64,000 bases of DNA. It comes from Octopus bimaculoides. Taxonomy: Eukaryota. The stretch covers positions 50,177,926 through 50,241,925 of the forward strand of contig NC_068999.1 in the NCBI RefSeq assembly GCF_001194135.2. Reading direction: 5' to 3'. The notes beneath the pieces were generated by a model. That model ran no database searches. It was not told the origin of the DNA and saw only the letters and a program-made list of their open reading frames with translations. Made by a program: the position numbers and the translations under genes. The stretch's first letter is position 1. Every line of letters begins with the position of its first letter. Shown piece by piece: positions 10,391 to 63,000 of the stretch.

Positions 10391-11154
10391 CACTTCAGTT
10401 CAGTTCCACTACATGGCACCTTGGACTGACCAAAGCCTTGTGAGTGGATTTGGTAGACGGAAACTGAAAGAAGCCTGTCATATGTATGTGTGTGTTTGAT
10501 CTATCCCCACACCGATTGACAACCTGTGCTGGTGTGTTTACACCCCCTTAACTTAGCAATTCAGCAAAGAAACTGATGGAATAAGCACCAGGCTTAAAAA
10601 AAACAAAAAATACAGGGTTGATACATTCAACTAAAAATTCTTCAAGATGGTGCCCCAGCATGGTCGTAGTTGAATGACTGAAACAAGTAAAAGATAAAAG
10701 TCACACCAATGAAATCTCAAAGCTAGAAGATAATGTATGCTTAATTCAAAGCAATCATCATCATCATCATCATTATTTAACATCTGCTTTCCATGCTGGC
10801 ATGGGTTGGACAGTTTGACAGGAGCTGGCCAAGTAGAAGACAGCATCAGACTGTCTGTTTTGGTATGGGTTTTACAGCTGGATGCCTTTCCAAACACCAA
10901 CCACCCCAAAGAGTGGACTGAGTGCTTTTTACATGGCACCAGCACAGGCGAGGTCAGTTTTGGCATGGTTTTTACAGCTGGATGCCCTTCCAAGTGCTAA
11001 CTTCACAGTGTAGACTGGATGCTTTTTTTTACAATGTCAATAAATAAGCATTACAACTGACTGAGTAATCTGAATGCTAAAGGGTTAATTACTGGTGCTG
11101 AGCAAGAAAGCATTTTGCATATGAAAAGAAAAAGGGGAAAAGATATTGACTTAC

Positions 11155-19335: not shown

Positions 19336-19724
19336 AGGCGTAGGAGTGGCTGTGTGGTAAGTAGCTTGTTTATCAACTACATGGTTCTGGGTTCAGTCCC
19401 ACTGCATGGTACCTTGGGCAAGTGTCTTCTACTATAGCCTCGGGCCAACTAAAGCCTTGTCAGTGGATTTGGTAGACAGAAACTGAAAGAAGCCTGTCAT
19501 GTGTGTGTGTATATATATATGTATGTATATGTTTGTGTGTCTGTGTTTGTCACCCTAACATCACTTGACAACTGATGCTGGTGTGTTTACGTCCCTGTAA
19601 CTTAGCGGTTCGGCAAAAGAGACCGATAGAATAAGTACTAGGCTTACAAAGAATAAATCCTGGGGTTGATTTGCTCGACTAAAGGCGGTGCTCCAGCAAG
19701 GCCGCAGTCAAATGACTGAAACGA
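19336..19724 (+). mobile_element. Abundant tRNA-derived SINE with internal (TA/TG)n; other copies at 47204-47660, 29563-29660 (minus), 58380-58600 (minus) and elsewhere
   Basis: Recurrent GGTTCAGTCCCACTG...GGGCAAGTGTCTTCTACTATAGCC...GTGGATTTGGTAGAC sequence in dozens of copies across the window. Confidence 0.85.
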
Positions 19725-19898
19725 GGTTGCCATNNNNNNNNNNNNNNNNNNNNNNNNNNNNNNNNNNNNNNNNNNNNNNNNNNNNNNNNNNNNNNNNNNN
19801 NNNNNNNNNNNNNNNNNNNNNNNNNNNNNNNNNNNNNNNNNNNNNNNNNNNNNNNNNNNNNNNNNNNNNNNNNNNNNNNNNNNNNNNNNNNNNNNNNC

Positions 19899-24430: not shown

Positions 24431-26199
24431 AAATTTATATATCTATATATATATAACGTGTTTTCCACTGACTATTCTTTTATTCTTTTTCCAGAATACG
24501 TTTCAAAGATGAGGTACAAGGAACAGGCATAAATATATTTATTTTTTTTTAAATGAAAAGTAGACAGAAAAAAGATATATATATATACACACACAAAACA
24601 TATTGCCAAAAGGAAGGAAGAAGGTTCATATCTGATCAAATAAAATAAGGTTTGAAAAATATTTAAAAAATAAAGATGAAATATATCAATTCATTATGTT
24701 CAAAGATTGTGATTTAAGCCTTAAGAAATTAGTTAACATCAATTGATTCCACAAAGGGCTAAGATGAAAGTGATCAAAGCAAAAACAAAAGGCTGTATTC
24801 TTCAATATTTAGAATGTTGAAGGAATGATGTTACAACAAAATGGAATAACTAATAATGTTTAATATTAAAATGGGGAGATAAGTGATGTAGAGAGTAAGA
24901 CAAGCCTTTTATAGGTCCGCTTCGTAAATGGATATTTAAAAGATGTGTTAGTTGTGAAGAACAGGAAGATTTCATATCCTGACAGATGTTTAAAGAAACT
25001 ATTTTGGGAAGAATCCGTTTGAAATATTTCTAGAGAACTAAAAACAATAAGAAACCACAAAGAAAAATAACCTTATATAGAATTATATTAATATAAAATC
25101 CACAATGCAAATTTCAAACCTATTCCTTGGTAGTTGTGTTCTTTTTTTTTTTATAAGTAAAACAAAATAAGTCAAGAAACATGACATATTAAAATAATTG
25201 ACAAAAAAAAAAGCAATAACTTTATAAATTTACAGCTGTTGGGTGGAATTCGAATATAATGCTTGAGAATAAATCTCATATCGGAGAAACTGATGTGATA
25301 TTTGAAAAAAAAAATAATAATAATCAGGTAATCTCCAGCAAAAATTCAAACAAAAAGCTGATCGAATTGTGAAGAAAAAACGTAACAAAAACAAAAGAAA
25401 ATTTCAAACTAAACATTACTTATATCAAGACGCAGACTAATTATAAGATATTTAAAGGAAAGAAGACAACAGTTCATGGAGACAAAAAATAAAAATAGGA
25501 ATCCTCATAGCTAAGTTGAAATTTTGCTCCTTTTTCTTTTAATTTTTAAGATGCAAAAGAAAAAAAAACTCGGGACAGGCTAAAAGCAGATTTCAGAGTA
25601 ATAAAAATCAGGCGAAACATTTTTCATGAGAACACTTTAGAAATTAAACAAGAACGATTTTAGCGATCAAAAATACTCAAGGTTTCGAGTAAGTTTAATA
25701 TTAAATTTTGTTGTCTTTTCCAAGCTGCCTTTTTTGTCTTCTTTTTGTTGAAGATGCAGAAAACTCTGCAATGACACAGTACTGATGCTTGATTGAATCA
25801 GAATAAAATCATAATAGTTACATTATTTTACATGAAATAATCGGTAATCTATATTGAGAAATCTACCAAAAAGCCAATCTAATTCTTTGGAAAACATTTT
25901 AATAAATATGTAATAGAAAAAAGAAAGAAAAAGGCGAGAAAACATGACACTTTGTGTCTTGTTTTCTCATTTCACAGAGCTGAAGAGACCTCATTTTTTT
26001 TTTACAATCAACGAATTCTCAATTTATAATCATTGGCTGCAGAAAATATCTACATGATACATTAATACAGTAGTAGAAATTTTGTCTCTGTACCTTATAT
26101 AGTGATGAGTTGTTCAATTTGACTGTATAAAATGAATTTTCAACTTGCCAAGATAAAAGGGAAATCACACAAGCGCCATAATATCATAAGGCGGGTTTG

Positions 26200-33869: not shown

Positions 33870-34577
33870 ATGGAAGATCATGATGTGGTGTGCCACAAGT
33901 GTGGGATACGGATACATCCACCGGCACTTATTATAACTTATTCTTATTCTTCAAGTGAGAAAATCAGACGAAGAACTATGCCTCTGCGCTTTTTCAATGC
34001 TAATTCCAAAATAGAGACCATCTCCGAAGAACTATTGAACAACCCACGCCATCAAAAGTTTGTCAAGAAACTTCCCCGCACACAGCTTGAAAACTTACTC
34101 AACATGCTAAAAGAATGCTTGAACGGTTCCACAATCAAAGAGTGTCTTCAAAGAAAGCAATTGGAAAAGAGTTTATTAATTAATCCCAACGAAGACTTAA
34201 ACAAGCTTGGGGATGAAGAGCTGAATGCAAGGAAAGCCATCATGAACAAACTGTTTGAGAAGAACGCAACGAAGCCAACCGACGAAGATTTCATTTACGA
34301 TATTCAGATCGAATATAGCAACTCAGATGCCGAGCCTTGTAGCTGGGACTGTATATATGATGCCGATGCTGTATCTGTTATTGTAGGAACTAATAAAGAT
34401 ATTGGAAGTGATGATGAATTTGGTGGTAGTGGGGGGAGTGATGGTGACATTAAAAGGCATGACAGTGATGATGTTGTCAACTATGACACTGGTGATGATG
34501 ATTATGATCTCGACGATGAAGATGATATCGATGATAAGGATGAGGATTCTGCTGCCAATGCTGATGATGAAACTTAA
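33870..34577 (+). CDS. CEP19: Centrosomal protein of 19 kDa, single coding exon, 235 aa
   Basis: Hallmark CEP19 motifs: KCGIRIHPPALIITY, RRRTMPLR, NNPRHQKF, INPNEDLNKLGDEEL, KAIMNKLFEKN, FIYDIQIEY, CSWD. TTTTACAG acceptor at 33836; ATG at 33870. Confidence 0.95.
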   Translation: MEDHDVVCHKCGIRIHPPALIITYSYSSSEKIRRRTMPLRFFNANSKIETISEELLNNPRHQKFVKKLPRTQLENLLNMLKECLNGSTIKECLQRKQLEKSLLINPNEDLNKLGDEELNARKAIMNKLFEKNATKPTDEDFIYDIQIEYSNSDAEPCSWDCIYDADAVSVIVGTNKDIGSDDEFGGSGGSDGDIKRHDSDDVVNYDTGDDDYDLDDEDDIDDKDEDSAANADDET

Positions 34578-40225: not shown

Positions 40226-40363
40226 TCAACGAAAGATACGAAAAGCATAATTACGAGATTTCAGAATAATATTGATGCTCAGTTGTTCAACTAAATCCTT
40301 CAAGGCAGGTAATATATTTTGTTCTTCATCTTCAGCAGTTTTAGAGTGAATATGTTTAAAGAC
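40226..40363 (-). CDS. Unrecognised gene A, probable terminal coding exon
   Basis: TTTTTTCTTCATTTTAG acceptor; phase 0 matches the previous exon; encodes VFKHIHSKTAEDEEQNILPALKDLVEQLSINIILKSRNYAFRIFR then TGA; AATAAA about 25 nt downstream. Confidence 0.6.
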   Translation of the reverse strand, partial: VFKHIHSKTAEDEEQNILPALKDLVEQLSINIILKSRNYAFRIFR

Positions 40364-40717
40364 CTAAAATGAAGAAAAAAATAATATATATATTTTATTA
40401 CTTCTACATTTCACAAAAAAGAAAAACAGTCTTTGCTTTTGGTACTTTTTGTTTTTTTGAAGTAGGAAAGAAGAAATAAAGTACTTACAAGCCAAAGACC
40501 ATTGAAATACTGTGAGCTGGGTTATTTCTTTTCATACTTAATAGTTATGGTATGTTTTTTTTCATTTAGCTGTCATAAAAGAAAAGTAATTTTATTATGA
40601 CTGCATTTGTAAGAAGAGGGATTAGTCAGAAAGAAAAAATGAGATGTTTAATAAGTAAATATCAATTAGACAAACTGGTTCATTCATAAATACACTCACA
40701 CAAAGAAGCTTCTACAT

Positions 40718-41037: not shown

Positions 41038-42951
41038 CTCTACATATCAACTCAACTTACTAGAAATAGCAGCCAAATCTCCTTCAAATATACCTCTTAA
41101 TATCTTACTGCAGTTCTATATAAATTTTGTCTAAATAAAAGGTGAGTTGGTCATTGTTGGATTGTTTCTCATGATAGATTTGCTTGATCAAACCCGACTT
41201 GAGACAAACAACAACAACAATAATAAACATATATGCACTTACACTTTCATAGTCTTTCACAGTTCACTGGACCAGTGCTTATCTCCAGTTTCCATGGTGA
41301 TAAGTAGATGAAAGCTAAATAAATGTTACAGTGGATAGGACCCAGTCATATCCAAAAGACTTTCCCAGCAGGTGCAACTGAACTCCTACCCACAAACTCA
41401 TACTAAACAAAATTTGCTTTCAGATGGTTTAAACAGAAGGGTGGATCATAGCCCCACAACATTCTCGGTAAGGCTTCTGAAACTAATTGTAGAAAGAGTG
41501 AATGAAACCAAAATTTACAGAACATTGCAATAGGAAGGAATATATCCTAATATCAAGGCATACTCTGACCAGAGTCATGGTCAAGAAGCTTGGAATAGAA
41601 TACAAATGGGCTAAAGACACCCAAGGGACAGGTTGTAGTATTAAATCAATGGTTAGATTTAAGCTTACATACACACACACAACCTTTAATCTAGTGATAA
41701 GAAAATGAGAGACAAATTTAACCCTAGGTAAAAACACTGGTCTATTGCAAGTCATCATCATCTTTTCTATGCCCACCTTTCCATGCAGTGTTTTTGTATT
41801 AAGGTTAGATATGCTCTTCCTGTTGCCAATCTTTTCTTTTTTCCACCCTTTAGCATAACATCCACAGCGATACAGTTTGTGAGTCGGTATGTTTGTCTCC
41901 TTGACTTGACATTGCATGATAGTTGCAAGTGGGTATCTCTGTCACACAAGTAGTGTTATATATTTCCAACATTATGCAAGAACATGTGTGGCCATGGGGA
42001 AATATTACTTTGCTTGGAATCAAGGGTTGGTGACAGGAGGGGTATCAGGCCACAGAAAATCTGCCTCAATAAACTTGTCTGATCCAGACAAGCATGATAG
42101 CGTGCACATTAAAACAATGATGATGATGGGGTCTTTACATAGGTGTCTAATCTGCTAGAAATAGCAGCCAAATTTCCATCAAATCAACTCCCACCTGCAC
42201 CCAAGTGAGAAGATACATAAAATAATGTAGTCCTAGATACAGTATTGGTGACAAACTAGTAGAAACATTTGAACATTGAATAGAAAGGCTTGGTGTTAGG
42301 AAGGGCATCCAGCCATAAAAGCCCTGCCAGGACAGACACAAGTCTGGTGCAGGTTCCTGCCTGGCTGACTCCTGTCAAACTGTCCAGCCCAAGCCAGCAT
42401 GGAAGACAGACATTAAATGATGATAAAGATGATGATATATATATTATACATACATAAATTTACATATATATGTGTGTGCATATATATATATTGCCAGTGC
42501 CCCTGGACTGGCTTGTGTGGGTGGCACATAAAAGACACCATTTCGAGCGTGGCCGTTGCCAGTATCGCCTGACTGGCCTTCGTGCAGGTGACACGTAAAA
42601 GCACCTACTACACTCTCTGGGTGGTTGGCGTTAGGAAGGTTATCCAGCTGTAGAAACTCTGCCAAATTTAGATTGGAGCCTGGTGTTGCCATCCGGTTTC
42701 ACCAGTCCTCAGTCAAATCGTCCAACCCATGCTAGCATGGAAAGCGGACGTTAAACAATGATGATATATATAATTTTTCCATTTACCAACTCCACTCACA
42801 AGTCTTGGTCTACAGAGCTTGGGATTGAAGTAGAAGATATTTTTTGTCCAAGTTGCCATGCAGTGGGACTGAACCTGCAGCCAAATAGTTGTTGAGCAAG
42901 TTTCTACATAGCCATGCATAACTACAACATAAAAATAATAAGAATACTTAC

Positions 42952-43051
42952 TGTTGGTATCGCTTTATAACCCTGCTTAAGCTCTACTTCCAAATCACGT
43001 CGGTAATATTTCACTTCTCCAGCAATTTCAAGTGTACCAATGAGATCAGTC
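42952..43051 (-). CDS. Unrecognised gene A, 100-nt variable coding exon
   Basis: TTTTACAG acceptor and GTAAGT donor; only one frame is open: TDLIGTLEIAGEVKYYRRDLEVELKQGYKAIPT (phase 2 to 0). The paralogous exon keeps the same length, frame and splice sites. Confidence 0.75.
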
Positions 43052-44158
43052 CTGTAAAATGAATTATGAATCTGACAAACACTGGAATCATATTCATCAT
43101 CATTTTAATGCCTGCTTTTTCCATATTAATCAGAGATTTATTGAGGCAGGTTCTTCTACAACTGAATGCTCTCCCTGTCATTAACCCTTCTTTGATTCTG
43201 AATATTATTTTCATTTTTTCTGAATGAGATGCTAATCCATCACAGAGTTAATAATCCCTAAGTACCACTGACAAACATTCTCAGCTGAGTGTGCTGGAAT
43301 AATGTGAAATGAAGTGCCTTGCTCAAGAACACAATGTAATGGCTGGGCTGAGAACTGAACATACAATCCAACAACCATCCTAACTATTAGGCNNNNNNNN
43401 NNNNNNNNNNNNNNNNNNNNNNNNNNNNNNNNNNNNNNNNNNNNNNNNNNNNNNNNNNNNNNNNNNNNNNNNNNNNNNNNNNNNNNNNNNNNNNNNNNNN
43501 NNNNNNNNNNNNNNNNNNNNNNNNNNNNNNNNNNNNNNNNNNNNNNNNNNNNNNNNNNNNNNNNNNNNNNNNNNNNNNNNNNNNNNNNNNNNNNNNNNNN
43601 NNNNNNNNNNNNNNNNNNNNNNNNNNNNNNNNNNNNNNNNNNNNNNNNNNNNNNNNNNNNNNNNNNNNNNNNNNNNNNNNNNNNNNNNNNNNNNNNNNNN
43701 NNNNNNNNNNNNNNNNNNNNNNNNNNNNNNNNNNNNNNNNNNNNNNNNNNNNNNNNNNNNNNNNNNNNNNNNNNNNNNNNNNNNNNNNNNNNNNNNNNNN
43801 NNNNNNNNNNNNNNNNNNNNNNNNNNNNNNNNNNNNNNNNNNNNNNNNNNNNNNNNNNNNNNNNNNNNNNNNNNNNNNNNNNNNNNNNNNNNNNNNNNNN
43901 NNNNNNNNNNNNNNNNNNNNNNNNNNNNNNNNNNNNNNNNNNNNNNNNNNNNNNNNNNNNNNNNNNNNNNNNNNNNNNNNNNNNNNNNNNNNNNNNNNNN
44001 NNNNNNNNNNNNNNNNNNNNNNNNNNNNNNNNNNNNNNNNNNNNNNNNNNNNNNNNNNNNNNNNNNNNNNNNNNNNNNNNNNNNNNNNNNNNNNNNNNNN
44101 NNNNNNNNNNNNNNNNNNNNNNNNNNNNNNNNNNNNNNNNNNNNNNNNNNNNNNNNNN

Positions 44159-44197
<39 letters not shown>

Positions 44198-44428
44198 CTG
44201 TGTGTGTTTGTATTTGTCCACCACCACTGCTTGAAATAAGAAATAAGATAGATAATGGTGAATTAAACAAAAATAACAAAAAGACAAAAAGCAGCAAAGA
44301 AGGTAGAGATACAGCAATTAACAAAGAAAGAAGTGAAGGAATGCAAAGAAGGAAGGAAGGAAGCTGGAAGGATGCAAAAAAGCAAACAAGCGAAAAAAAA
44401 AGGGAAGATGTATATATTTAAGAGTTAC

Positions 44429-44462
44429 CAGAATCAAATGAATAATAGGAACGGCCAGCCAT
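44429..44462 (-). CDS. Unrecognised gene A, first coding exon (whole exon 44429-44482), MAGRSYYSFDS
   Basis: Strong pyrimidine tract plus CAG acceptor; upstream in-frame stop; GTGATGG start context; GTAACT donor (phase 1). The coding sequence is identical in the inverted copy at 56556-56589. Confidence 0.6.
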
Positions 44463-44584
44463 CACACAGGTCTATTAATGAGCTGATTGGGGAAAAAAAC
44501 AAATACAATATAAGTCAATAAGCACAAAAAGAAGACAACACAGGAGGGAGATGTTTTAACAAAGGGATAGACATTATTCTAACT

Positions 44585-46650: not shown

Positions 46651-48909
46651 ACTTGTAAGTGGTGGAGGTGAGAGATGCTAAAGCAGGCGCAAGACGATAG
46701 TGAGAAAAGAGTAAAGTAACAAATGAATATGAAATTAAATATTTATCATCATTTTCACACACTATGAGGCATATATATTACATAGAATAAAATTTCATCG
46801 ATCCAAAAAATGTAATTAAACATATGCGCGCGCAAACACATTTCTGCATTCACACACACGCATATGTATGCCCTTACATAGATGTACATATGTATTATTT
46901 CTTTACTACGCACAAGGGGCTACACACAGAGGGGACAAACAGATTAAGTCGATCATATCGACGCCAGTGCATAACTGGTACTTATTTAATCGACCCCGAA
47001 AGGATGAAAGGCAAAGTCGACCTCGGCGGAATTTGAACTCAGAATGTAGCGGCAGACGAAATACCGGTAAGCATTTCGCCCGGCGTGCTAACCACTCTGC
47101 CAGCTCGTATATATGTCCCAACAGAGTGGTTAGATGTGTATCATGGTAAACAGAGGCAAAAGGAATGTGTATGCCTTTGAAGATTGTTTTCAGAATAGGA
47201 AACGGCGTAGGAGTAGTTTTGTGGTAAGTAGCTTGTTTACGAACCACATGGTTCCGGGTTCAGTCCCACTGCGTGGCACCTTGGGCAAGTGTCTTCCACT
47301 ATAGCCTCGGGTCGACCAAAGCTTTGTGAGTGGATTTGGTAGACGGAAACTGAAAGAAGCCCGTTGTATTTATGTATGTATATNNNNNNNNNNNNNNNNN
47401 NNNNNNNNNNNNNNNNNNNNNNNNNNNNNNNNTATATATATATATATATATGTCTGTGTGTTTGTGTGTCTGTTCCCCCACCATCGCTTGACAACCGATG
47501 CTGGTGTGTACACGTCCCCGTAACTTAGCGGTTCGGCAAAAAGAGGCCAATAGAATAAGTACTAGGCTTACAAAGAATAAGTCCTGGGGGCGATTTATTC
47601 GACTAAAGGCGGTGCTCCAGCATGGCCGCAGTCAAATGACGGAAACAAGTAAAAGAGTAAAAGAATAACACAAGAGATTGCCATCCTAATCTAATGTTAC
47701 TATTAATAACAGTACTACCCACTGTTCACTTTAATCTGAATGTATACCTCACAGCTCCATGGCAACTCTACCATCTGTAAATAAAACAAAATTATGAATA
47801 CATGAAACCCTGAATTATTCCATTATTCTCAGCACGAGAGACTATACATATGCAGTGACTGTAAATTCGCCCATTTACCTGGAATGAGACGCACACTCCA
47901 TAAAGCAATGTCAGCCAACTGCAAGCAAGACATCTTACTCTACCACTACCATTAAATGCTAAATCACACTCAATAATTTCTACACATGTAACCTGGAATC
48001 CTAAAATCTGTTGCCATTCCCAACACAATAGATTATATATGATGTGTGACTGTCCCTTCAATCATCTTTCAGAGACTCGACGCACTAGTAAAAACATGAC
48101 ACCAAACCACCACTAAATCCGCAATAAAAATTTCCCTTACAATGGCCATGTTGGTGCAGACTTTCATTGAAACCCAGAGAGTCACCCAGATACACAGGGT
48201 ACAATAGTAAAATCAACAGCTGTAAACCGTATAACTATAACCATATTCAACAGTACAACTACATCAACTCCAGACAACAGCTCCTTCCAAAACAAAAAAA
48301 ACAAAAAATTTAGCTATGATGAATTAGGCAAAAGAAGTAATAAAAAAAAAAAAGACTTCTTATTCTCACACTGCACCAAACACTGCTATTGCCCCCGTGC
48401 ACAACCACACCACTGTTGCCATTAATCCACAAAATCAGCTCTACAATATGCTGAACGTACAAGGTCTTTTGCACTTCGCAAATTGAACAGATGTATCATA
48501 TCTGCCAGTAAAACCCAAAATTACCTTCAATATTTTTTTTATAATTTGACCCACTTATTGGTGAGTCATGTTTCAAACAGCCTGCATTACGAAAGAAGGT
48601 TGCCCACACCAGTTTTAGACAATGTAACCTTATATGCAGATAAATAATTTCCTTCCTTCGATTCACTCATTGATCAGGGTTGATCTAGGACTGATATATG
48701 CTATGAACCACCCTAGGCAATAAACAGCGCTTATATTCTTTCTACTCAAATAACAGCTGGTCCCCGATCTTCCTATTTTGTTACATTGTTGTAATTAAAG
48801 CTTTTTTTACCTCATGTTACCACTTAATATTGAATTCCTTATTTAGTGTGTATGTGTGTGCGTGCGTGTATACATAAAGATACACATATCCAATCATTCA
48901 CACATGTAC

Positions 48910-49630: not shown

Positions 49631-52600
49631 AATTTAGCTGTGTGAATTGGTGTGTAGTAACGCTGTGCGCATGCGTAGTTTCACGCATGCGTGGAATTCA
49701 ACAACCAAGCTTTCCCCCGACGTCGCCAAGTTTCAACAGGACATCATTACCACCGTCAATATCATTACCACCACACATACAGAACAGCTATATTACAGTT
49801 CCTCCGCCGACGTCTTCACCATCAATGTACTGTCTACCACAATGTCGTGCGCCAACAACCCCACCACCAGGGACACACCATATAAACACACTCGGTTTTA
49901 TCTTCACTGTGGAGTGGAATTTATCCACTCACGCACAACAGTCAGAGCTAGCCGAATTGGATATTCCGTNNNNNNNNNNNNNNNNNNNNNNNNNNNNNNN
50001 NNNNNNNNNNNNNNNNNNNNNNNNNNNNNNNNNNNNNNNNNNNNNNNNNNNNNNNNNNNNNNNNNNNNNNNNNNNNNNNNNNNNNNNNNNNNNNNNNNNN
50101 NNNNNNNNNNNNNNNNNNNNNNNNNNNNNNNNNNNNNNNNNNNNNNNNNNNNNNNNNNNNNNNNNNNNNNNNNNNNNNNNNNNNNNNNNNNNNNNNNNNN
50201 NNNNNNNNNNNNNNNNNNNNNNNNNNNNNNNNNNNNNNNNNNNNNNNNNNNNNNNNNNNNNNNNNNNNNNNNNNNNNNNNNNNNNNNNNNNNNNNNNNNN
50301 NNNNNNNNNNNNNNNNNNNNNNNNNNNNNNNNNNNNNNNNNNNNNNNNNNNNNNNNNNNNNNNNNNNNNNNNNNNNNNNNNNNNNNNNNNNNNNNNNNNN
50401 NNNNNNNNNNNNNNNNNNNNNNNNNNNNNNNNNNNNNNNNNNNNNNNNNNNNNNNNNNNNNNNNNNNNNNNNNNNNNNNNNNNNNNNNNNNNNNNNNNNN
50501 NNNNNNNNNNNNNNNNNNNNNNNNNNNNNNNNNNNNNNNNNNNNNNNNNNNNNNNNNNNNNNNNNNNNNNNNNNNNNNNNNNNNNNNNNNNNNNNNNNNN
50601 NNNNNNNNNNNNNNNNNNNNNNNNNNNNNNNNNNNNNNNNNNNNNNNNNNNNNNNNNNNNNNNNNNNNNNNNNNNNNNNNNNNNNNNNNNNNNNNNNNNN
50701 NTTTCTTGCTGGCCAGCGATTGAGCAAGGACGTGTTTAGCTGCCTCTCTCCATCTTTCGAACTTACGCTAGACGGCTCGCTCACATCTACATACCAACGT
50801 CCCAACAACCATGCTCACACACACAGAAGACGTCTCAACAAACAAGAGCTAAAGATGTATATATTCCACCTTGAATAAATGTTGTTTGTGTTGATAGTCT
50901 GGAGTTCAGCGTTCCGTTAATTCTTGATTTTATATAGGAAAGTCAGGTATACATCTAATGATGTATAACCCACTTTCCACTAAAGGTGCATTAATCACTG
51001 GCATATTCAATACTGTACACTGTATCTGAATCAATTCACTAGCATTACTACCTCAGCCTTGCAAGCTCTATTGCATACATGCACATGCATCTCTATTATG
51101 CATCTACCGCCTTGTTTTGCAACACGTCTGCGCCAGCTCAATTCTTCTCCCGACTCAAAGCACGTCGGATGTTCACATGCTCTGCGCTCATGTTTAGACA
51201 TAATTTCTCCCTGTTAGACCCCCGTTTGGTCACGTAATTAACAGAGAAAATTATCTGTCTTCTGCATCACCCCAGCATGCTACACTCTCGTTCTTGCTAA
51301 CTCAGCAATTAACCACGACAACAGCACCAGACGCATTTCACACACTGCAACCCTGCAGGAAGATCTTTCGTATCACGGATTGAGAATACACGCACTCACT
51401 CGCTCACCTCAGCTTATTTGACAGACAATTTCGAAACGTGCACCTGCACTCCTGTATACGCCGTCACGCGCTTATTTGCTGTACTGCTCAGTCACTGACT
51501 GCATACATTTTGGCGCGCAAAGCGACACCGATATTCGTATTAATCTGAATAGAAAACTCCTCTCACCTGATATGCAAAATTTCTCCTCAGCGATGCGCTT
51601 CTTTTGTCTCCTTCGATCGTTCGTTTTCTTTCCCAGAACCTCACTGCCGAGGGGAGTGATGTAGTGGACCTTGCAAGCATGAAGTGGATTCGATCCACCA
51701 TAGCCAAATTTAAATTAACTGTTCAACAGAATGTTTCTCACGGTGGAACAATGGTTATTCTTTGACAGCAGTTTTACATTTGCCAGATTGCCTTAGCTAG
51801 GCCGGAATAATATCTTGACCCTTATAACTTCTTCTACTTCACCAAAAGCTAGAATAGAGATATCATAGTACCACCAACGAAGCCCATTGTTCTCAACGAT
51901 TTGTCTATCCTTCTGAATAGTTATAAAAACAAGAACCCGAAAGCAAAAGAAAGTCACTTCGGTAACAACTCAGTGAGAACGAAGTCTGGCTGACCAGCTA
52001 GAACCTTGGTCAGAGGGAGAAATGAAGTTTACTGTCAGCAACTGTAAGACAACCCTACAACTCTAGCTCTAATTCTGTTCTATTACATCATTCTATCTCT
52101 CTCTGTAATTACTACTAAACAATGAAGAGGACACAAACACTAACTTTACTTCGCATGCTTTTGGATTTATCATAACCTGCCCGTCGGACATAGTGGATAA
52201 CAGCTAGCCTTCGGCCGTACCTTTGTACCCTGTTGTGTTCACCACTCTGATTGGTTGGTATTGGCGCAATTTGTCTCTTGCTCTATTGCGCGCCAAGATG
52301 CAACCCAACCAATCGTGGGACAGTCTTTTTTGAACCCCAGTTTGAGATGACAGTATGTTATAAATAGCGAGCCTCTCACCGTCACAGTTTGTCAGTCTTT
52401 CGGCTCAAGACCTTCTGGCACCTGTACTCATCCTAACCTTTTTCCTTCCATGAACTATGTATGGAATTGTGAAGCACCCAGCAAGTGAAAATCATCATTT
52501 TCCTACAAATTTCACCCGTTACAAACGAAATACACACCGCCGATAGTTGTTGACAAACAACAGCAGTAATTTTAGCCAGCTGAATACACGTCATTGATTG

Positions 52601-54377: not shown

Positions 54378-55300
54378 ATGTCATATTTTGTGCCTGAACG
54401 TGGAATTTTTAATGTTATGACCTTATTTCGTCTCGGAAGAGATTTGGGAACAACGGAAAAGGCCATTGACTGGTGTAGAAAATTTGGATTAGTATAAAGA
54501 CAAGAAATTTGTTGAGGAGTACCTTGTGTTAATGGAAGTTATATACCCATTCAATTGATAGAATAACTTGGAGATGTACTGTTTGTCGCAAAACTATAAG
54601 CATGCAGAAAGGCTCGTTTTTTGAAAAAAGTCAGTTGGAAATCTGGCAAATAATAGCTTTTATTCATTTATGGTGCATCAGTGTTGGAAAAGAAAGAGAT
54701 CTTAGTAGTGAAGCAGGAATTGCGCAATGTGAGATAACCTCATCCACAACATATGCAGACTGGAATCAGTTCTGTCATGATGTTTGTGTAGCTCATTTTC
54801 TAAAATATCTCCCCCCCCCCAAAAAAAAAATAGGTGGTACACAGGTTATTGTGGAAATTGATGAAACAATGATGCAAAACATCAGTGAACATCAGTGGGT
54901 ATTTGGAGAACACTCCCCCTCACAAAATCTTGGTTTTTTAGTACCAGTTAAAGACCAAACTGCCGAAACATTGCTCCCAATTATCAATGAATTCATATTG
55001 TCAGGAAGCATTAAATATTCTGATAACGGAAAGCATATCAAAGTTTGTCACAAAAGACATTATATAAACATTTGACGGTAAACCATACCATTAATTTTGT
55101 TGATCCACTGTCACACTGTACCACAAACCATGTTGATTAAATGTGGTCTTCATGCAAAAACAAAATAAAATCAACTCATGAAGTACATAGTAATGATTTG
55201 GTTGATTTCTTAGCAGAATTTATGTGGAGTCAGCAATTTGGATATGAACCATTTTTCAACTTTTGGACCCAAATAGCCACTGAGTTATATGTTATATAAG
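54378..55300 (+). pseudogene. Degraded Merlin (IS1595/ISXO2-like) DDE transposase
   Basis: IGGTQVIVEIDET, WVFG, VPVKDQTAETLLPIINEFILSGSIKYSD, then a frameshifted TVNHTINFVDP...FLAEFMW; stops and frameshifts. Confidence 0.88.
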
Positions 55301-55779: not shown

Positions 55780-56480
55780 CAAAATGGTGAAATGGGTGGG
55801 TGCAGAAATGATGCCATGTTGTGTTTGGCAAGAAACTCACAAGTGAGGCGAGCTTGGTGACAGGATGTGTTGTCATGCAGAATCTAATTCTTTGTGCTCC
55901 ACAGATCTGTTACTTTTGTCGAACGTCCTCCCTCGAATTCTTCCAAACATCACAGTAGAACTCTCAATTGATGGTCTGGCCCTGAGGGATGAATTCATGA
56001 AGCACAATATTGTGGAAGTTGAAAAAAAAAAGATGAGCATACTCTTGATTGAGCTGCGACTCTGTCGTGCCTTCTTCAGTTGTGGAGAAGAAGGGCTCTT
56101 CCATTGTGATGACTGCCTGCATCTTGGGGTTGTATCTATAGAACCAACTATTGTCACCAGTGATGACCCTTGACATGAAAGTTGGGTCATCAGTGGCATG
56201 GAGTCTGAACAGACTTGGATGCAATGTTCTTTCTGCTCAGTAATCAACAGGCAGGGGACATGCTTGGCATAAACAGACTGCATGTTCAATTCGGATGTTA
56301 GGATTGCCTGCACAAACACATACATCACAACAACAACAACATCAGCAATGTCGTTGACTGCCCTCCAACATTCCTCATGCACAAGCTGATGAATTTTACC
56401 CACATCTCTGGGGGTGACATTTGTGGTAGGTCTTTCAGATCACTCAGCCTTCGAAGCACCTCTGCCACTAGAAACATTAT
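55780..56480 (-). mobile_element. Degraded mariner transposase
   Basis: VYAKHVPCLLITEQK, DDPTFMSRVITGDNSWFYRYNP, KKARQSRSSIKSMLIFFF, HEFIPQGQTIN across several frames. Confidence 0.88.
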
Positions 56481-56555
56481 GTACAACTCATTTGTGTTTA
56501 TTGACTTATATTGTATTTGTTTTTCCCCCCATCAGCTCATTAAAAGACCTGTGTG

Positions 56556-56589
56556 ATGGCTGGCCGTTCCTATTATTCATTTGATTCTG
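56556..56589 (+). CDS. Unrecognised gene B, first coding exon (whole exon 56536-56589), MAGRSYYSFDS
   Basis: TTTTCCCCCCATCAG acceptor; upstream in-frame TAA; ATG at 56556; GTAACT donor at 56590. Confidence 0.6.
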
Positions 56590-56828
56590 GTAACTCTTAA
56601 ATATATACATCTTCCCTTTTTTTTTCGCGTGTTTGCTTTTTTGCATCCTTCCAGCTTCCTTCCTTCCTTCTTTGCATTCATTCACTTCTTTCTTTGTTAA
56701 TTGCTGTATCTCTTCCTTCTTTGGTGCTTTTTGTCTTTTTGTTATTTTTGTTTAATTCACCATTATCTATCTTATTTCTTATTTCAAGCAGTGGTGGTGG
56801 ACAAATACAAACACACACAGATATATAT

Positions 56829-56865
<37 letters not shown>

Positions 56866-57925
56866 CACACATGTATGCACAGACACATATGTGATAGGCT
56901 ACTTTCTGCATCCATCTAATNNNNNNNNNNNNNNNNNNNNNNNNNNNNNNNNNNNNNNNNNNNNNNNNNNNNNNNNNNNNNNNNNNNNNNNNNNNNNNNN
57001 NNNNNNNNNNNNNNNNNNNNNNNNNNNNNNNNNNNNNNNNNNNNNNNNNNNNNNNNNNNNNNNNNNNNNNNNNNNNNNNNNNNNNNNNNNNNNNNNNNNN
57101 NNNNNNNNNNNNNNNNNNNNNNNNNNNNNNNNNNNNNNNNNNNNNNNNNNNNNNNNNNNNNNNNNNNNNNNNNNNNNNNNNNNNNNNNNNNNNNNNNNNN
57201 NNNNNNNNNNNNNNNNNNNNNNNNNNNNNNNNNNNNNNNNNNNNNNNNNNNNNNNNNNNNNNNNNNNNNNNNNNNNNNNNNNNNNNNNNNNNNNNNNNNN
57301 NNNNNNNNNNNNNNNNNNNNNNNNNNNNNNNNNNNNNNNNNNNNNNNNNNNNNNNNNNNNNNNNNNNNNNNNNNNNNNNNNNNNNNNNNNNNNNNNNNNN
57401 NNNNNNNNNNNNNNNNNNNNNNNNNNNNNNNNNNNNNNNNNNNNNNNNNNNNNNNNNNNNNNNNNNNNNNNNNNNNNNNNNNNNNNNNNNNNNNNNNNNN
57501 NNNNNNNNNNNNNNNNNNNNNNNNNNNNNNNNNNNNNNNNNNNNNNNNNNNNNNNNNNNNNNNNNNNNNNNNNNNNNNNNNNNNNNNNNNNNNNNNNNNN
57601 NNNNNNNNNNNNNNNNNNNNNNNNNNNNNNNNNNNNNNNNNNNNNNNNNNNNNNNNNNNNNNNNNNNNNNNNNNNNNNNNNNNNNNNNNCAGCTGAGAAT
57701 GTTTGTCAGTGGTACTTAGGGATTATTAACTCTGTGATGGATTAGCATCTCATTCAGAAAAAATGAAAATAATATTCAGAATCAAAGAAGGGTTAATGAC
57801 AGGGAGAGCATTCAGTTGTAGAAGAACCTGCCTCAATAAATCTCTGATTAATATGGAAAAAGCAGGCATTAAAATGATGATGAATATGATTCCAGTGTTT
57901 GTCAGATTCATAATTCATTTTACAG

Positions 57926-58025
57926 GACTGATCTCATTGGTACAATTGAAGTTAATGAAGAAGTGAGATATTACCGACTTGACTTGAGTAGACAGCTTGA
58001 CGAAGGTTATCGACCGACCTTAACA
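57926..58025 (+). CDS. Unrecognised gene B, 100-nt variable coding exon
   Basis: TTTTACAG acceptor and GTAAGT donor; open frame TDLIGTIEVNEEVRYYRLDLSRQLDEGYRPTLT; 18 of 33 aa identical to the gene A exon. Confidence 0.75.
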
Positions 58026-58629
58026 GTAAGTATTCTTATTATTTTTATGTTGTAGTCATGCGTGGCTGTGTAGTTAAGAAACTTGGTCAACAACATTTTG
58101 GCTTCAGGTTCAAACCAACTGTGTGGCACCTTGGGCAAATGTCTTCTTCTTTAGCTCCAGACTCTGTAGAGCAAGACTTGTGAGTGGAGTTGGTAGATGG
58201 GAAATTAATATATATATATATATATTCTTTTTAGTCATTTGACTGCGGCCATGCTGGAGCACTGCCTTTAATCAAATAAACCGACCCCAGGACTTATTCT
58301 TTGTAAACCTAGTACTTATTCTATCAGTCTCTTTTTCCAAACCGCTAAGTTACAGAGACTTATACATATCAACATTGGTTGTCAAGCAATGGTGGGAGAC
58401 AAATACAGACACACAAACACACACATATATATATACATACAAACATAAATACATACATACATACGACAGGCTTCATTCAGTTTCTGTCTACCAAATCCAC
58501 TCAAGGCTTTGGTCCATCTGAGGCTATACTAGAAGTCACTTGCCCAAGGTGCCATGCAGTGGGACTGAACTTGGAACCATGTGGTTGGTAAGCAACTAGA
58601 GGCAGGGCAGAGCAGGGTTCACCTAATTA

Positions 58630-60010
58630 GACTTAGTTGACTTTTACCCATCTATATCACAAGAGTTACTGATCAAAGTACTTTCCTTTGCTCAGGGCTT
58701 CACTGATATTAATGATAGAGACATAGATGCCATCTTACATGCCAGGAAAATAGTGCTGTTCAATAAAGGTTGACCTGGGTCAAACAGTCTGACCCCGAGG
58801 ATTCCTTCATTATGGTGATAGGAGCCTATGACAGTGCTGACATTTCTGACCTCATTAGGCTATACATTCTGAATACCTTAGGATAGAAGTTCCTTTTAGT
58901 CCTCTTTGGACTCTGGCCATCTCTACAGGAACCAATGGGCACACCCTTGATAAACTTAGAAAGGACCTGTCTAGCACCCTAGGCTCCATGGGACTCAAAA
59001 TAACAACTGACACCAACCTCACTATCGTAAACTTCATAGATGTCACACTAAACTTGGGCGCCAGTGCATACAAGCCCTACTGCAATCCAAACAAAAGGCT
59101 GCCCTACATCAACACAGCATTCTGCCACCCACCTATCATGTTCAGGAATCTAGTGAAGGGTGTCAGCAAAAATATCTTGAACTTGTCCTCAAATCAAGAA
59201 ATTTTGGCTGCTATGGCTCCCTATTACAGCGAGCCTCTAGCATACAGTAGGCTTAAGAACCACATCTCTTATATACTGAGCCCTAGCACTCACAAAAGGA
59301 AGCACCTTGGGAATGTCATTTGGTTTGACCCACCCTTCTCACTCAACGTTAAACCTTATGTGGGAAGAATGTTCCTTATGTTTTGTAGACAAGCCCTTCA
59401 CACACACGCTCGAGTATGGATGTTTGTTCAAGAGGCCTAACCTCAGAGTTTCCTTTAGTTATGCACCCAACATGGAAAGAATATTGACACACAGCCACGA
59501 GATGCAAGAGGCTGGTTGCTCATGCAAGAAATACAATGACTGCTTAGTGCAGAGACCAACATGAGGCTAAGGGAGTTGTATATGAGGTTGTGGTAGTATC
59601 CAGCACTAACAACTAGAGCAATAGCAGCAGAATTAACAGCACCAACAATAGCCATGACACCTCCAGCAACAGTAGCAGCAACATCAACACTGTGGCTGAA
59701 GGTGGCTACTACAATAGCAATGACAACAGCAGCATTGCCGGACTCATACCCCTGTGATAACAACACTGATGGTAAATCCAACAACAGCAACAACTTCTTC
59801 ACACCCAGGCAATGGAGAAAACATGAGAGGCAATAACAGCTAAAACTCAGGTTCAGAGATACATTGGCTTGGCTAGAACTACCTTTAAGTGACACCTGTA
59901 CAACCACAGGTCCTCTTTTAGGGTCCCAGAAAAACATTACATTATGTCATTGGCCATCCATGTATGGTACCTTGAGGATGAAGGAATTTCATACGAAATT
60001 AAATGGAGGA
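58630..60010 (+). mobile_element. Degraded Penelope-like element (RT plus GIY-YIG endonuclease)
   Basis: DFYPSI..., VNFIDVTLNL...YKPY...YINTAFCHPP, VIWFDPPFS, CSC/C linker, then YIGLARTTFK*HLYNHRSSF...WYLEDEGISYEIKWRII. Confidence 0.85.
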
Positions 60011-63000
60011 TAATTGAACAGAACATTTGAGGTCCTATATAAATGAAAGTGGATGAACCCTTAATGACTTGATTAACCTGGGAATTTTTTGATATTCAAG
60101 ACACAAATTATATTGCCCTTGCCTGCATTTCAGGCACTACCTACTGCAGACATAGGACTACCTGTTCGCTGATTAGGGCTGTATAGAATATTTGCAGACT
60201 GGACCCAACCTAGAAGTGGAGATTCCATCTGGTTTGCCAGTCCTCAGTCAAAGCGTCCAACCCATGCTAGCATGGAAAGCGGATGTTAAACGACGATGAT
60301 GATGATATCATTATCATTTATTTAACATCCCTTTGTTCTTGTTGGCATGGGTTGGACAGTTTGGCAGGAACCAGTGAGCCAGATGACTGTACTTAACTCC
60401 ACTGTCTACTTTGGCATGGTTTCTACAGCCCTTCATAAAACCAACCACTTCACAGTGTAGCTGTGTGTTCCTTTGTCTTGAATTTGCACATTGATTGTAA
60501 ATGTGCATCACAATCTGTCAAAAATGTGCTTGGCCTTGAGCAAACATAACCTCTGTATGGTCTAGAGGGAATTTGCTGTTAGGTTTTGGCCATAGCTTAA
60601 GCAGGTACAGCGCCTTCAGATGTAACCCAGCCTGAAAGTTGATGCTGCAAGAGAACCTGAGAGGTAAGTGAATCACACCTTGTCCCTCATACTACATTTC
60701 CTGACTCATTACTCTTCTCACAAATGTATTCATAGTACATAAGGTTACTTTTTCTTTCATGGCAGCTAAATAAAAGAAAACATACCATAACTCTTAAGTA
60801 TGGATCTAGGTGCATGCTTTTTTAATTGTAAGTAGTTTCTTTCTTCTTTCCTACTAAAAAAAAATATATCAAAAGCAAAGACCCTCATTGCCATCATTAG
60901 AGCTTCATCAGCAATATGCCAGCTCCCACCCCCAATCGATGTCTTGACAAATTGGTAGAATCATTAGAATGTCAGACAAACTGTTATGTTTTAGTTTCAA
61001 ATTACACTGAGGTCAGTTTGGCCTTTCATCATTTGAGGGGCAGAGGTGGGTGGGGTGTGTGTGTGTGTGATATAATTGACCTTTCTCAATCCACAGACTT
61101 TTGGCTTTGAGTCTATGTTAGAAGTTACTGTTATAAACTTAGGTGGCAAGCTGGTGGAATTGTTAGTGTGTTGGACAAAATGCTTAGTGGTACTTCATCC
61201 TGTTCTTTACATTCTCAGTTCAAATTCTGCTGGGGTTGGCTTTGCCTTTCATTCTTTTGGGATCAGTAAAATGAATACCTGTTAGATACTGAGGTTGTTA
61301 TAACCAACTTACTCTCCCCTGAATTTGCTGAGCTTGTGCCTAACTTTAAAGCTATTAAGGCAGCAGGCTGCCAGAATTGTTGGCTCATCAGACGAAATGT
61401 TTAATGGCATTTCTTTTGGCTCTTTACGTTCTGAGGTCAACTTTGCCCTTCGTCCTTTCAACGTCAAGAAAATAAGTACCAGTTGAGCACTGGGGCTGTT
61501 GTCATCAACTTACTTTTCCCCTAAAATTGCTGACTTTGTGCCAAAATTTGAAACCATCAAGGATTAGTAGAATTGTTGGAATATAAAACAAAATAACATA
61601 TTTGTTCTGGATCTGTACATTCTGAGTTCAAATCTTGTTGACATCAATTTTAGATTCATCTTTCTGAGCCAATAAAATAAAGTAGTAGTTTGAACATTCC
61701 ATTTAAATACTGGATTCAATATAATCAACTATTTTTCACCCACTAAATTTCAGCTCTTTTTACGTTCTGGGTTCAAATCCCATCAACGTTCAATTTGCCT
61801 TTTATCCTTTCGGGGGTTGATAAAATAAAGTACCAGTCAAACACTGGGGATCGATGTAATCGACTTGCCCCCTCTTGCCAATCCATCACAAGGTTACACA
61901 TTTACAACTGAGTACCAATGTGAAACGAAGCGTTTTGCTCAAGAACACAACTGACCGCCTCGTCTGGGATTCAAAACCATAATCTTACGATCCTGAGTGC
62001 AACACCCTAACCACTAAATATCTATTCAGCAGGAGTGTAATTTATTTTTACTCTGAAGAGGAGAAGTAGTGTTCATGCATGGCCTCTGTACACTCCTCCA
62101 AGACTATTCCTATTGATGAGGTTCTTTATGTTCAGTGTTAGAAGGAAAATGTTGGTTTGGAGGAAATTCCTTTGGGTTACAGATGTGCGATGCAGGTATG
62201 GTTAAGGAGTTAAAATATTTGTTTTGAGATTGCAAGATCCTGGATTTGATCCCACTGAGTGGCATTGGGGGAAAATGTTCTTTACTCTAGATTCATGTTG
62301 ATCCAAAGCCTTGGGAATGAAATTGGTGAAGCAGGAATTTATGTGGAATCTTGTCAGGTGGATTGTACCCATAATCTAAGGGTCCTGCCTTGTCACATAT
62401 TCTTATGCTGATTCAGTTTGGAATTATGTAAAGGGTAGATCATGTCTATGGAATACTCAGCCACTGACATTACAGTTCTATAATTCAATGAGTCATGTGT
62501 GCATTTAATTGAACAATTATATTGTCCAAAACAATGTAGGCTATAGATATCATCCAACTATTTCATTTGTGGTCTTCCTTTTGCTCTCCCGCCAGTTGAA
62601 CTTCACCATAAAATTTGTGCTGTGATTCTTTTCTCAGATGTTGTAACCATATGGCCATGTTATTAGATCTGAGACCTCTCCATGCAGGGGGGTAGTGGCT
62701 TAACCTGGAGTAATTCTCTAATCTTCAAGCTATGCATTCACATTATTGTGTAACATCATTTGGTAAAAAAGAAAAAAAAAATTGATAATTTCCATATATT
62801 TTATCTTTTTCTTGTTTCAGACATTAGACTGTAGCTAATCTGGGGCACTGCCCTGAAGAATAAATTGACCTCAGTTATCTTATTTTAAAGCCTGGTACTT
62901 ATTCCATTGGTCTCTTTTTCCCAGATGCTTAGTTTGGTGGGGAGAGAGTAAACAGACTGCCACTGGGTGTCAAGTAGTGGTGGGGAGACAAACACAGATG

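Follow-up and report, generated by a model that had tools for sequence, protein, structure and literature searches.

Genes that lie in inverted repeats or palindromes, such as the palindromes of the primate Y chromosome, undergo gene conversion from arm to arm. A different pattern is known from venom genes such as those for snake PLA2 isozymes and conotoxins, in which accelerated evolution of exons is combined with conserved introns. [quoted passage not shown]

The locus described here is part of a stretch of 64,000 nucleotides from Octopus bimaculoides (assembly GCA_001194135.2, chromosome CM046619.1), the whole of which is called the window. It carries two genes, A on the minus strand and B on the plus strand, which form an inverted, head-to-head duplication about 12 kb apart and are both without annotation in O. 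bimaculoides. A sequence-only reading of the window had described one of their exons, here called exon 3, as hypervariable and had proposed diversifying selection on a binding surface. We assign a probability of about 0.8 to the explanation that A and B are a pair of orphan genes forming a conversion mosaic, in which a conversion tract ends inside exon 3. With this pattern, the locus appears to belong with paralogs in concerted evolution by non-allelic gene conversion.

As in the opsin and RH genes, non-allelic conversion apparently keeps the octopus paralogs similar in introns and in some of the coding sequence, certain exon segments are strongly diverged, and phylogenetic relationships are incongruent between parts of the gene; in the O. 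vulgaris/O. sinensis pair, peaks of this kind are seen at exons 1 and 2. In contrast to these systems, the octopus copies are inverted and not tandem, and exon 3 of O. bimaculoides lies at a tract end and is not an island, all 3' sequence standing at paralog divergence. Like palindrome arms, the inverted octopus copies on one chromosome reach 96.5-100% identity over 1.5-2 kb, presumably via intrachromosomal conversion, but the arms are short and only partly homogenised, the spacer measures 12 kb (52 kb in O. vulgaris), and apart from the homogenised parts the duplicates are old and have diverged. The likeness to venom genes consists in exons that exceed the adjacent non-coding DNA in divergence, in replacements that exceed silent changes, and in membership of a small multigene family. 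Unlike venom genes, the octopus family lacks a signal peptide, a framework of cysteines, and any known toxin fold, its omega is not significantly above 1, and much of the contrast comes from conversion of non-coding DNA. The closest relatives are orphan genes of Octopus itself, namely O. sinensis LOC115222236 and, in O. vulgaris, CAI9736933/34 and two other hypothetical proteins, which have exon structure, phases, motifs, and the head-to-head arrangement in common with A and B; the O. bimaculoides copies differ in being unannotated and in that their exon 2 is not visible.

Gene models, family and neighbourhood

A word-indexed protein search with the concatenated exon 3 peptides gave no match, but the resulting suspicion that exon 3 is not real was overturned by an exhaustive HMMER search, in which a 33-aa profile built from both exon 3 peptides matched three O. 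vulgaris proteins with E = 1e-12 to 3e-6. Altogether, the profile search yielded four proteins, all from Octopus; LOC115222236 comes from O. sinensis, and the other three are hypothetical proteins of O. vulgaris. A fifth family protein represents another isoform encoded by one of these O. vulgaris genes. The full gene structure was obtained from four gap-free loci, which are the V-type tandem copies of O. vulgaris (L002 and L003), O. sinensis LOC115222236 (L004), and the A-type gene of O. vulgaris (L005). The family proteins have 79-138 aa and are encoded by four coding exons with a conserved 72-codon frame across exons 1-3. Exon 3 is 100 nt long and in phase 1, and its length, phase, and splice sites are identical in six copies. 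The earlier assignment as a coding exon of two real paralogs was borne out by these homologs and by exons 1, 3, 4c, and 4d, all of which are present in the window and have kept their splice sites and phases. Exon 3 is evidently a real exon, and the four-exon gene to which it belongs is unannotated and restricted to Octopus. The features of the two genes are as follows.

44429..44462 (minus): gene A exon 1, ATG at 44462, MAGRSYYSFDS plus 1 nt, donor GTAACT
44159..44528 (minus): gene A homogenised 5' block, 96.5% identical to 56491-56859
43393..44158 (no strand): assembly gap in gene A, 766 N, expected site of exon 2 (about 82 nt, ..TVKWSDMKTGS..AYIEG)
43052..43287 (minus): gene A 3' end of intron 2, 100% identical to 57690-57925 with 0/236 mismatches
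42952..43051 (minus): gene A exon 3, G + TDLIGTLEIAGEVKYYRRDLEVELKQGYKAIPT, closest relative O. vulgaris A-type L005 (24/33 aa)
43032..43033 (minus) in A and 57944/57945 in B: breakpoint of the presumed conversion tract, between nt 19 and nt 20 of exon 3
42984..42990 (minus): compensated 2-nt frameshift in gene A exon 3, nt 62-68
42764..42918 (minus): SINE-like repeat in gene A intron 3, used as neutral yardstick
40538..40569 (minus): gene A exon 4c, LNEKKHTITI plus 2 nt, followed by a GT donor; the read-through stop ends at 40522
40229..40363 (minus): gene A terminal exon resembling exon 4d, VFKHIHSKTAEDEEQNILPALKD..., with a homolog in the last exon of O. sinensis LOC115222236
56556..56589 (plus): gene B exon 1, MAGRSYYSFDS
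56921..57689 (no strand): assembly gap in gene B, 769 N, expected site of exon 2
57690..57925 (plus): gene B 3' end of intron 2, equal to that of gene A and starting exactly at the gap edge
57926..58025 (plus): gene B exon 3, G + TDLIGTIEVNEEVRYYRLDLSRQLDEGYRPTLT, which from nt 20 onward groups with the V-type genes of O. sinensis and O. vulgaris
58058..58215 (plus): SINE-like repeat in gene B intron 3, an ancestral insertion common with gene A
60766..60825 (plus): gene B exon 4c, LNKRKHTITLKYGSRCMLF followed by a stop, 15/19 identical to the O. vulgaris P0003 tail

Exon 1 shows the family feature MAG..YSFD (34 nt, donor GTAACT) in both genes; in gene A it fits the family N-terminus MAGR.YYSFD and is nucleotide-identical to exon 1 of gene B. 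The surrounding 5' block of gene A contains the promoter-proximal region, exon 1, and the start of intron 1, and its mismatches to gene B fall on 12 of 335 non-coding nt and on none of the 34 nt of exon 1. The exon 2 motif TVKWSDMKTGS...AYIEG was not found in any frame of the window. In the loci of O. vulgaris and O. sinensis, which are free of gaps, exon 2 follows exon 1 at a distance of about 0.9 kb and precedes exon 3 by 1.0-1.3 kb, and judged by this spacing the second exons of A and B are expected to lie hidden in the two N gaps. Both genes are probably unannotated because exon 2 of each is in an assembly gap. When the arms were compared with each other by tblastx and sensitive blastn, exon 3 was the only shared coding block detected, since exons 1 and 4c are too short to register.

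The 3' end of the family is more variable. The ortholog of gene A exon 4c is found at L005 15431-15462, and exon 4d of gene B was looked for and not found. A GT donor follows exon 4c in A (40537-40536), B (60798-60799), and L005; O. sinensis has TT at this place (L004 15750-15752), which fits the RefSeq model omitting exon 4c. The reading frame of exon 4d varies among copies, and the C-terminal exons switch splice donor and frame. With donor loss at exon 4c and frame changes in 4d, the C-terminal tail of the family is evolutionarily labile.

Neither the two 33-aa peptides nor the family matched a Pfam domain, a profile search of the PDB with the family gave no match, and an AlphaFold2 model from a 6-sequence alignment was not confident (pLDDT 39). 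No hydrophobic signal sequence was seen by inspection of the N-terminus MAGRSYYSFDS. The analogy with toxin or immune genes thus finds no support in the features tested, which were a signal peptide, a Pfam domain, and a PDB match, and like the proposed binding surface it is speculative. A literature search for LOC115222236 found no paper.

The ortholog of gene A is O. vulgaris CAI9736933/CAI9736934 (locus L005), and the 3' part of gene B is orthologous to O. sinensis LOC115222236 and to both O. vulgaris tandem copies. The split between A and B is older than the divergence of O. bimaculoides and O. vulgaris. On the same O. vulgaris chromosome, L005 lies on the strand opposite to L002 and L003, and the head-to-head arrangement is therefore ancestral. 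L002 and L003 themselves (O. vulgaris OX597832.1, about 47.64-47.74 Mb) arose by a recent tandem duplication of a unit of about 44 kb and are 98.5% identical over 11.3 kb of the gene region; a Glyco_transf_11 (fucosyltransferase-like) gene is located just downstream of L003. In L003, the 66 nt of exon 2 (10946-11011) contain 7 substitutions, of which 6 are replacements and 1 is silent, together with an in-frame deletion of 3 nt, although the 11 kb around them are 99.5% identical to L002; only one of these changes matches the A-type paralog, and no donor was found among the sampled copies. In L002, exon 1 (24746-24778) has a 1-nt deletion (33 vs 34 nt) that breaks the frame into exon 2, and the deposited annotation uses an upstream first exon of 58 aa instead (L002 10001-10174).

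The only annotated gene within 23870-44577 (20.7 kb) of the window is CEP19 (33870-34577, plus strand), which is intact and intronless, encodes 235 aa (PF14933, E = 2.5e-44), and lies about 6 kb past the 3' end of gene A. Three transposon-like ORFs of 150-176 aa were recognized by eye between and within the arms at 54602-55075 (plus), 55873-56403 (minus), and 58988-59440 (plus); none of them had a Pfam match at E <= 0.01, and for the first and third no annotated gene was found. An Rfam scan of the window from 40 to 61 kb gave no match. Interspersed repeat families recur in the window at 42491-42765, 58226-58595, 47204-47649, 19337-19725, and other places, and one of them is the SINE-like element with the core ...GGTTCAGTCCCACTGC.TGGCA.CTTGGGCAA... 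Just past the common SINE the arms carry differing insertions, and the duplication is therefore old. A mis-assembly of haplotypes was ruled out, as transposon insertions differ between the arms and the distal divergence amounts to 15-30%.

A mosaic with a breakpoint inside exon 3

Upstream of nt 20 of exon 3, A and B do not differ at any of 255 positions, which comprise 236 nt of intron 2 and the first 19 nt of exon 3. When the two genes are compared with a V-type sequence (V), sites at which A and B agree against V and sites at which B and V agree against A occur in a proportion of 55:0 on the 5' side and of 13:36 on the 3' side (Fisher p = 2.4e-17). The site pattern thus switches at exon 3 nt 19/20, which is therefore a recombination breakpoint. 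A four-taxon comparison of A and B with O. vulgaris L005 (P) and O. sinensis L004 (V) gives the following site patterns and distances (d).

Upstream of exon 3 nt 20: A with B against P with V, 14 sites; A with P against B with V, 0 sites; d(A,B) 0; A and B about 22% from P and V (d(A,P) 0.236)
Exon 3 nt 20-100: A with P against B with V, 6 sites; A with B against P with V, 0 sites; d(A,P) 0.185, d(B,V) 0.185, d(A,B) 0.309
Downstream non-coding DNA including the SINE: A with P against B with V, 14 sites; A with B against P with V, 2 sites; d(A,P) 0.068, d(B,V) 0.067, d(A,B) 0.154, d(P,V) 0.156

Past nt 20 of exon 3, A and B each cluster with their respective ortholog, which for A is the O. vulgaris gene. 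The two sides show the pattern of concerted evolution, in that the paralogs are closer to each other within the species in the 5' part and the orthologs group together in the 3' part. The SINE in intron 3 is inserted at one and the same junction in A, B, L005, and L002-L004, all of which also have derived changes in common, and other copies of its family are found elsewhere in the window. Independent insertions of the SINE into each arm were ruled out, since junction and derived changes are shared, also by the other species.

A similar mosaic is seen in the relatives. In O. vulgaris and O. sinensis, the identity between A-type and V-type genes amounts to about 96.6% over a region that begins upstream of exon 1 and includes exon 2; about 100 nt past exon 2, homology is lost. 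Exon 1 of L003 is nucleotide-identical to exon 1 of L005 (5/5 diagnostic sites), although the rest of L003 is 99.5% identical to L002. Homogenisation of the 5' half evidently is a real feature of the family and not only an effect of assembly.

The mechanism that we propose starts from an old, inverted pair of an A-type and a V-type gene, which preceded speciation. Non-allelic gene conversion between the inverted copies, which is presumably the mechanism rather than another kind of recombination, would have repeatedly homogenised the 5' half of the gene. The latest tract in O. bimaculoides would extend from the exon 1 block (96.5%) through intron 2 (100%) and end at exon 3 nt 19/20, and 3' of this breakpoint the copies retain the old paralog divergence. 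Exon 3 would then look hypervariable because conversion wiped out the differences just upstream of it. In contrast to the described orphan genes, gene B would be a chimera of an A-type 5' part and a V-type 3' part; in the upstream sequence common to A and B, 19 sites match P alone and 15 match V alone, which does not fix the donor and the direction of conversion.

Conversion alone does not account for all of the divergence. Against it stands the divergence of exon 3 nt 20-100, which in both ortholog pairs amounts to 18.5% as compared with 7-10% for non-coding DNA. Conversion alone is without explanation for this excess, and an extra force acts on the coding patches; it also fails for exons 1 and 2, which in the O. 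vulgaris/O. sinensis pair show a four-fold excess over the homogenised non-coding DNA.

Divergence and possible selection in the coding patches

In both genes, exon 3 has 100 nt, is preceded by an acceptor ending in ttttacag and followed by the donor gtaagtattctt; a single frame is open in both. Direct comparison confirms the counts of the sequence-only reading, with 25 nt and 15 of 33 aa differing between A and B, no stop, the same splice sites, and GAT/GAC as the sole purely synonymous codon. In the ungapped alignment all 25 differences per 100 nt fall on nt 20-96; they are distributed over the three codon positions as 11:9:5 and consist of 14 transitions and 11 transversions. A bias due to A-to-I editing was ruled out, as transitions and transversions (14 vs 11) show no bias.

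The absence of an indel, which had also been noted, applies to the net length only. At nt 62-68, A has GAAGTAGAG and B has AGTAGACAG, which represents a compensated frameshift of +2/-2. The gain of the gapped alignment exceeds that of more than 99% of random-substitution simulations (p = 0.01) and is robust to a gap-open penalty of -10. The frameshift is specific to A, which has EVE at the place of S/G-R-Q/H in every other member. Polarisation of the 25 differences with four taxa assigns about 6 to ancient paralog divergence, 10 to A, 5 to B, and about 4 to multiple hits; 5-6 of the 10 A-specific differences derive from the frameshift, to which six of the 25 are credited. Since A and B are old paralogs, ordinary divergence between paralogs accounts for most of the 25 differences.

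In line with the earlier statement, the exon is more diverged between A and B than the downstream intron, with 0.25 overall and 0.31 for nt 20-100 vs 0.146-0.154. In the ungapped comparison with the adjacent intron, 25/100 stand against 27/185 (p = 0.037); with the frameshift treated as indels, the substitution rate of exon 3 is 0.156-0.19 vs 0.146 for the intron, which is non-significant. The Nei-Gojobori counts (Sd 4.2, Nd 20.8) match the earlier count by hand and give a pS of 0.18, a pN of 0.275, and an omega of 1.66, so that the claimed pN/pS above 1 holds as an estimate but is not significant (Fisher p = 0.42). The proposed fixed scaffold was recovered at some positions, with LIG, YYRxDL, L, G, and T conserved across all six family members.

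Estimates from the ortholog pairs, for which wider non-coding baselines are 0.092 (A-P) and 0.099 (B-V), are as follows.

A-P, exon 3 codons 7-33: pN 0.168, pS 0.241, ratio 0.70
A-P, exon 3 codons 7-33 without frameshift codons: pN 0.091, pS 0.238, ratio 0.38; pN equals the intron rate (0.092)
B-V, exon 3 codons 7-33: pN 0.233, pS 0.010, with Nd 14.8 and Sd 0.2; N vs S p = 0.032
Pooled orthologs, exon 3 and exon 4c: pN 0.159, pS 0.094, ratio 1.70; N vs S p = 0.28

An alternative to the conversion mosaic is that diversifying selection on the variable patches is the main reason why exons diverge more than introns, in exons 1-3 and throughout the family. The ratio of pN to pS is above 1 in most contrasts, with 1.53 for A-B and 1.28-1.66 for P-V in addition to the pooled value. 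In B-V, the pN of exon 3 exceeds non-coding divergence (p = 0.0024), as does the pooled ortholog pN (p = 0.006), although the latter is inflated by clustered events. The pS of the exons (0.094) is about equal to non-coding divergence (0.095), and replacement divergence is about 1.7 times this neutral yardstick. Across four lineages, the core of exon 3 (nt 43-61, KYYRxDL) is variable at 2/19 sites, the flanking patches at 32/62, and local non-coding DNA at 32-34/147; the patches exceed non-coding DNA with p = 3e-5 by sites and p = 0.013 with adjacent changes collapsed, the division into core and patches being post hoc. In the O. vulgaris/O. sinensis comparison (P-V4), exons 1 and 2 differ at 16/116 sites vs 40/1167 in the homogenised non-coding DNA (p = 1.4e-5). 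Selection would further agree with the burst in exon 2 of L003 (7 substitutions and the in-frame deletion), which separates this copy from its near-identical sister L002, with the maintenance of the ORF across the family, and with the acceptance of divergence peaks within converting duplicates as a signature of selection (PMC3924837).

Several results weigh against selection as the main reason. The N vs S tests are non-significant for the pooled data (p = 0.28-1.0), and B-V exon 3 is the only contrast that reaches p = 0.032. In the A lineage, pN/pS is below 1, at 0.70, and falls to 0.38 when the frameshift codons are left out. Much of the excess resides in clustered multi-nucleotide events, namely the frameshift of A and a cluster of five nt in exon 3 that is specific to the V-type lineage of O. 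vulgaris and O. sinensis (nt 35-39 in L004/L002/L003, GAAGT to AGCAA, EV to SK); this second clustered change inflates the replacement counts. Such changes reportedly mimic positive selection, a point attributed to work by Venkat, Hahn and Thornton in 2018. Exon 1 of O. bimaculoides is wholly homogenised (0/34), so selection does not always resist conversion, and exon-sized conversion from other paralogs, which is seen in exon 1 of L003, could produce the same islands. Selection as the main cause thus appears rather unlikely. Of the diversifying selection proposed earlier, the observation stands that the patches outpace non-coding DNA, whereas omega is non-significant and the contrast comes largely from the conversion tract.

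Diversifying selection on exon 3 is possible but unproven, and faster-than-neutral protein change in the family is likewise suggested but not proven by the sequence comparisons. Positions outside the core change at or somewhat above the neutral rate, which fits weak constraint with possible diversifying selection. A broader view, in which concerted evolution of the non-coding and 5' sequence of this Octopus orphan family is combined with faster-than-neutral, replacement-biased patches around invariant motifs and with bursts such as that in L003 exon 2, is doubtful in our judgement. If true, it would describe a new, rapidly diversifying cephalopod family of recognition type, in which selection works against or alongside gene conversion.

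Reading frame, assembly and implications

Neutral decay of the homologs is not apparent from the frame, the integrity of which had been named as a check: exons 1-3 contain no stop in any copy examined, and the sole uncompensated frameshift is that in exon 1 of L002. About 78 substitutions in the exons have left the 72-codon frame intact in the visible exons of A and B and in L003, L004, and L005. Under neutrality, the probability of no stop is 0.012 and that of at most one uncompensated frameshift 0.015, the latter based on the non-coding rate of 0.105 indels per substitution. The reading frame evidently is kept beyond neutral expectation, and a protein is presumably made. These values oppose the alternative that the frame is non-functional, i.e. 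that the exons are neutrally decaying pseudo-exons or part of a non-coding transcript and that an omega of about 1 reflects lack of constraint. This alternative would agree with an omega statistically not distinguishable from 1, with the low pLDDT of 39 and the lack of Pfam and PDB matches, with the missing annotation in O. bimaculoides, with the C-terminal exons that vary in frame and splice donor between copies, and with the 1-nt deletion in L002. It is quite improbable, as the exon 2 indel of L003 is in frame and the frameshift of A is compensated 5 nt later, the motifs TVKWSDMKTGS and KYYRxDL are invariant among old paralogs, and splice sites and phases are conserved.

The gaps of 766 and 769 N have the same relative position in both inverted copies, where exon 2 is expected, and the symmetry centre of the inverted pair also lies in a gap (49970-50701). 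The near-identical inverted copies probably broke the short-read assembly, which cost both genes their annotation, and short-read mis-assembly could overstate the identity of the 100% tract at the gap edge. That the perfect upstream identity is altogether a short-read artefact, with the reads of one copy used twice near the gaps and true copies that are uniformly diverged, would agree with the identical tract of gene B beginning exactly at a gap edge, with the near-equal gaps, and with the gap at the symmetry centre, but it is very improbable, because the separate exon 1 contigs are 96.5% and not 100% identical and thus stem from two distinct, very similar copies, the 5' half is likewise homogenised, at about 96.6%, in gap-free long-read assemblies from O. 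vulgaris and O. sinensis, the gaps themselves were likely caused by near-identical inverted copies, and the conclusion of a mosaic holds even at a true identity of 96-97%.

The conversion mosaic illustrates that a conversion tract ending inside an exon can pass for a hypervariable exon and that a compensated frameshift inflates dN/dS, and both effects are cautions for paralog scans within a single genome. For O. bimaculoides, two genes missing from the annotation are recovered, and a lineage-restricted family is flagged in which coding patches may outpace the neutral rate. If confirmed in more octopod genomes, the family would provide a tractable case in which selection meets gene conversion in a young gene family.
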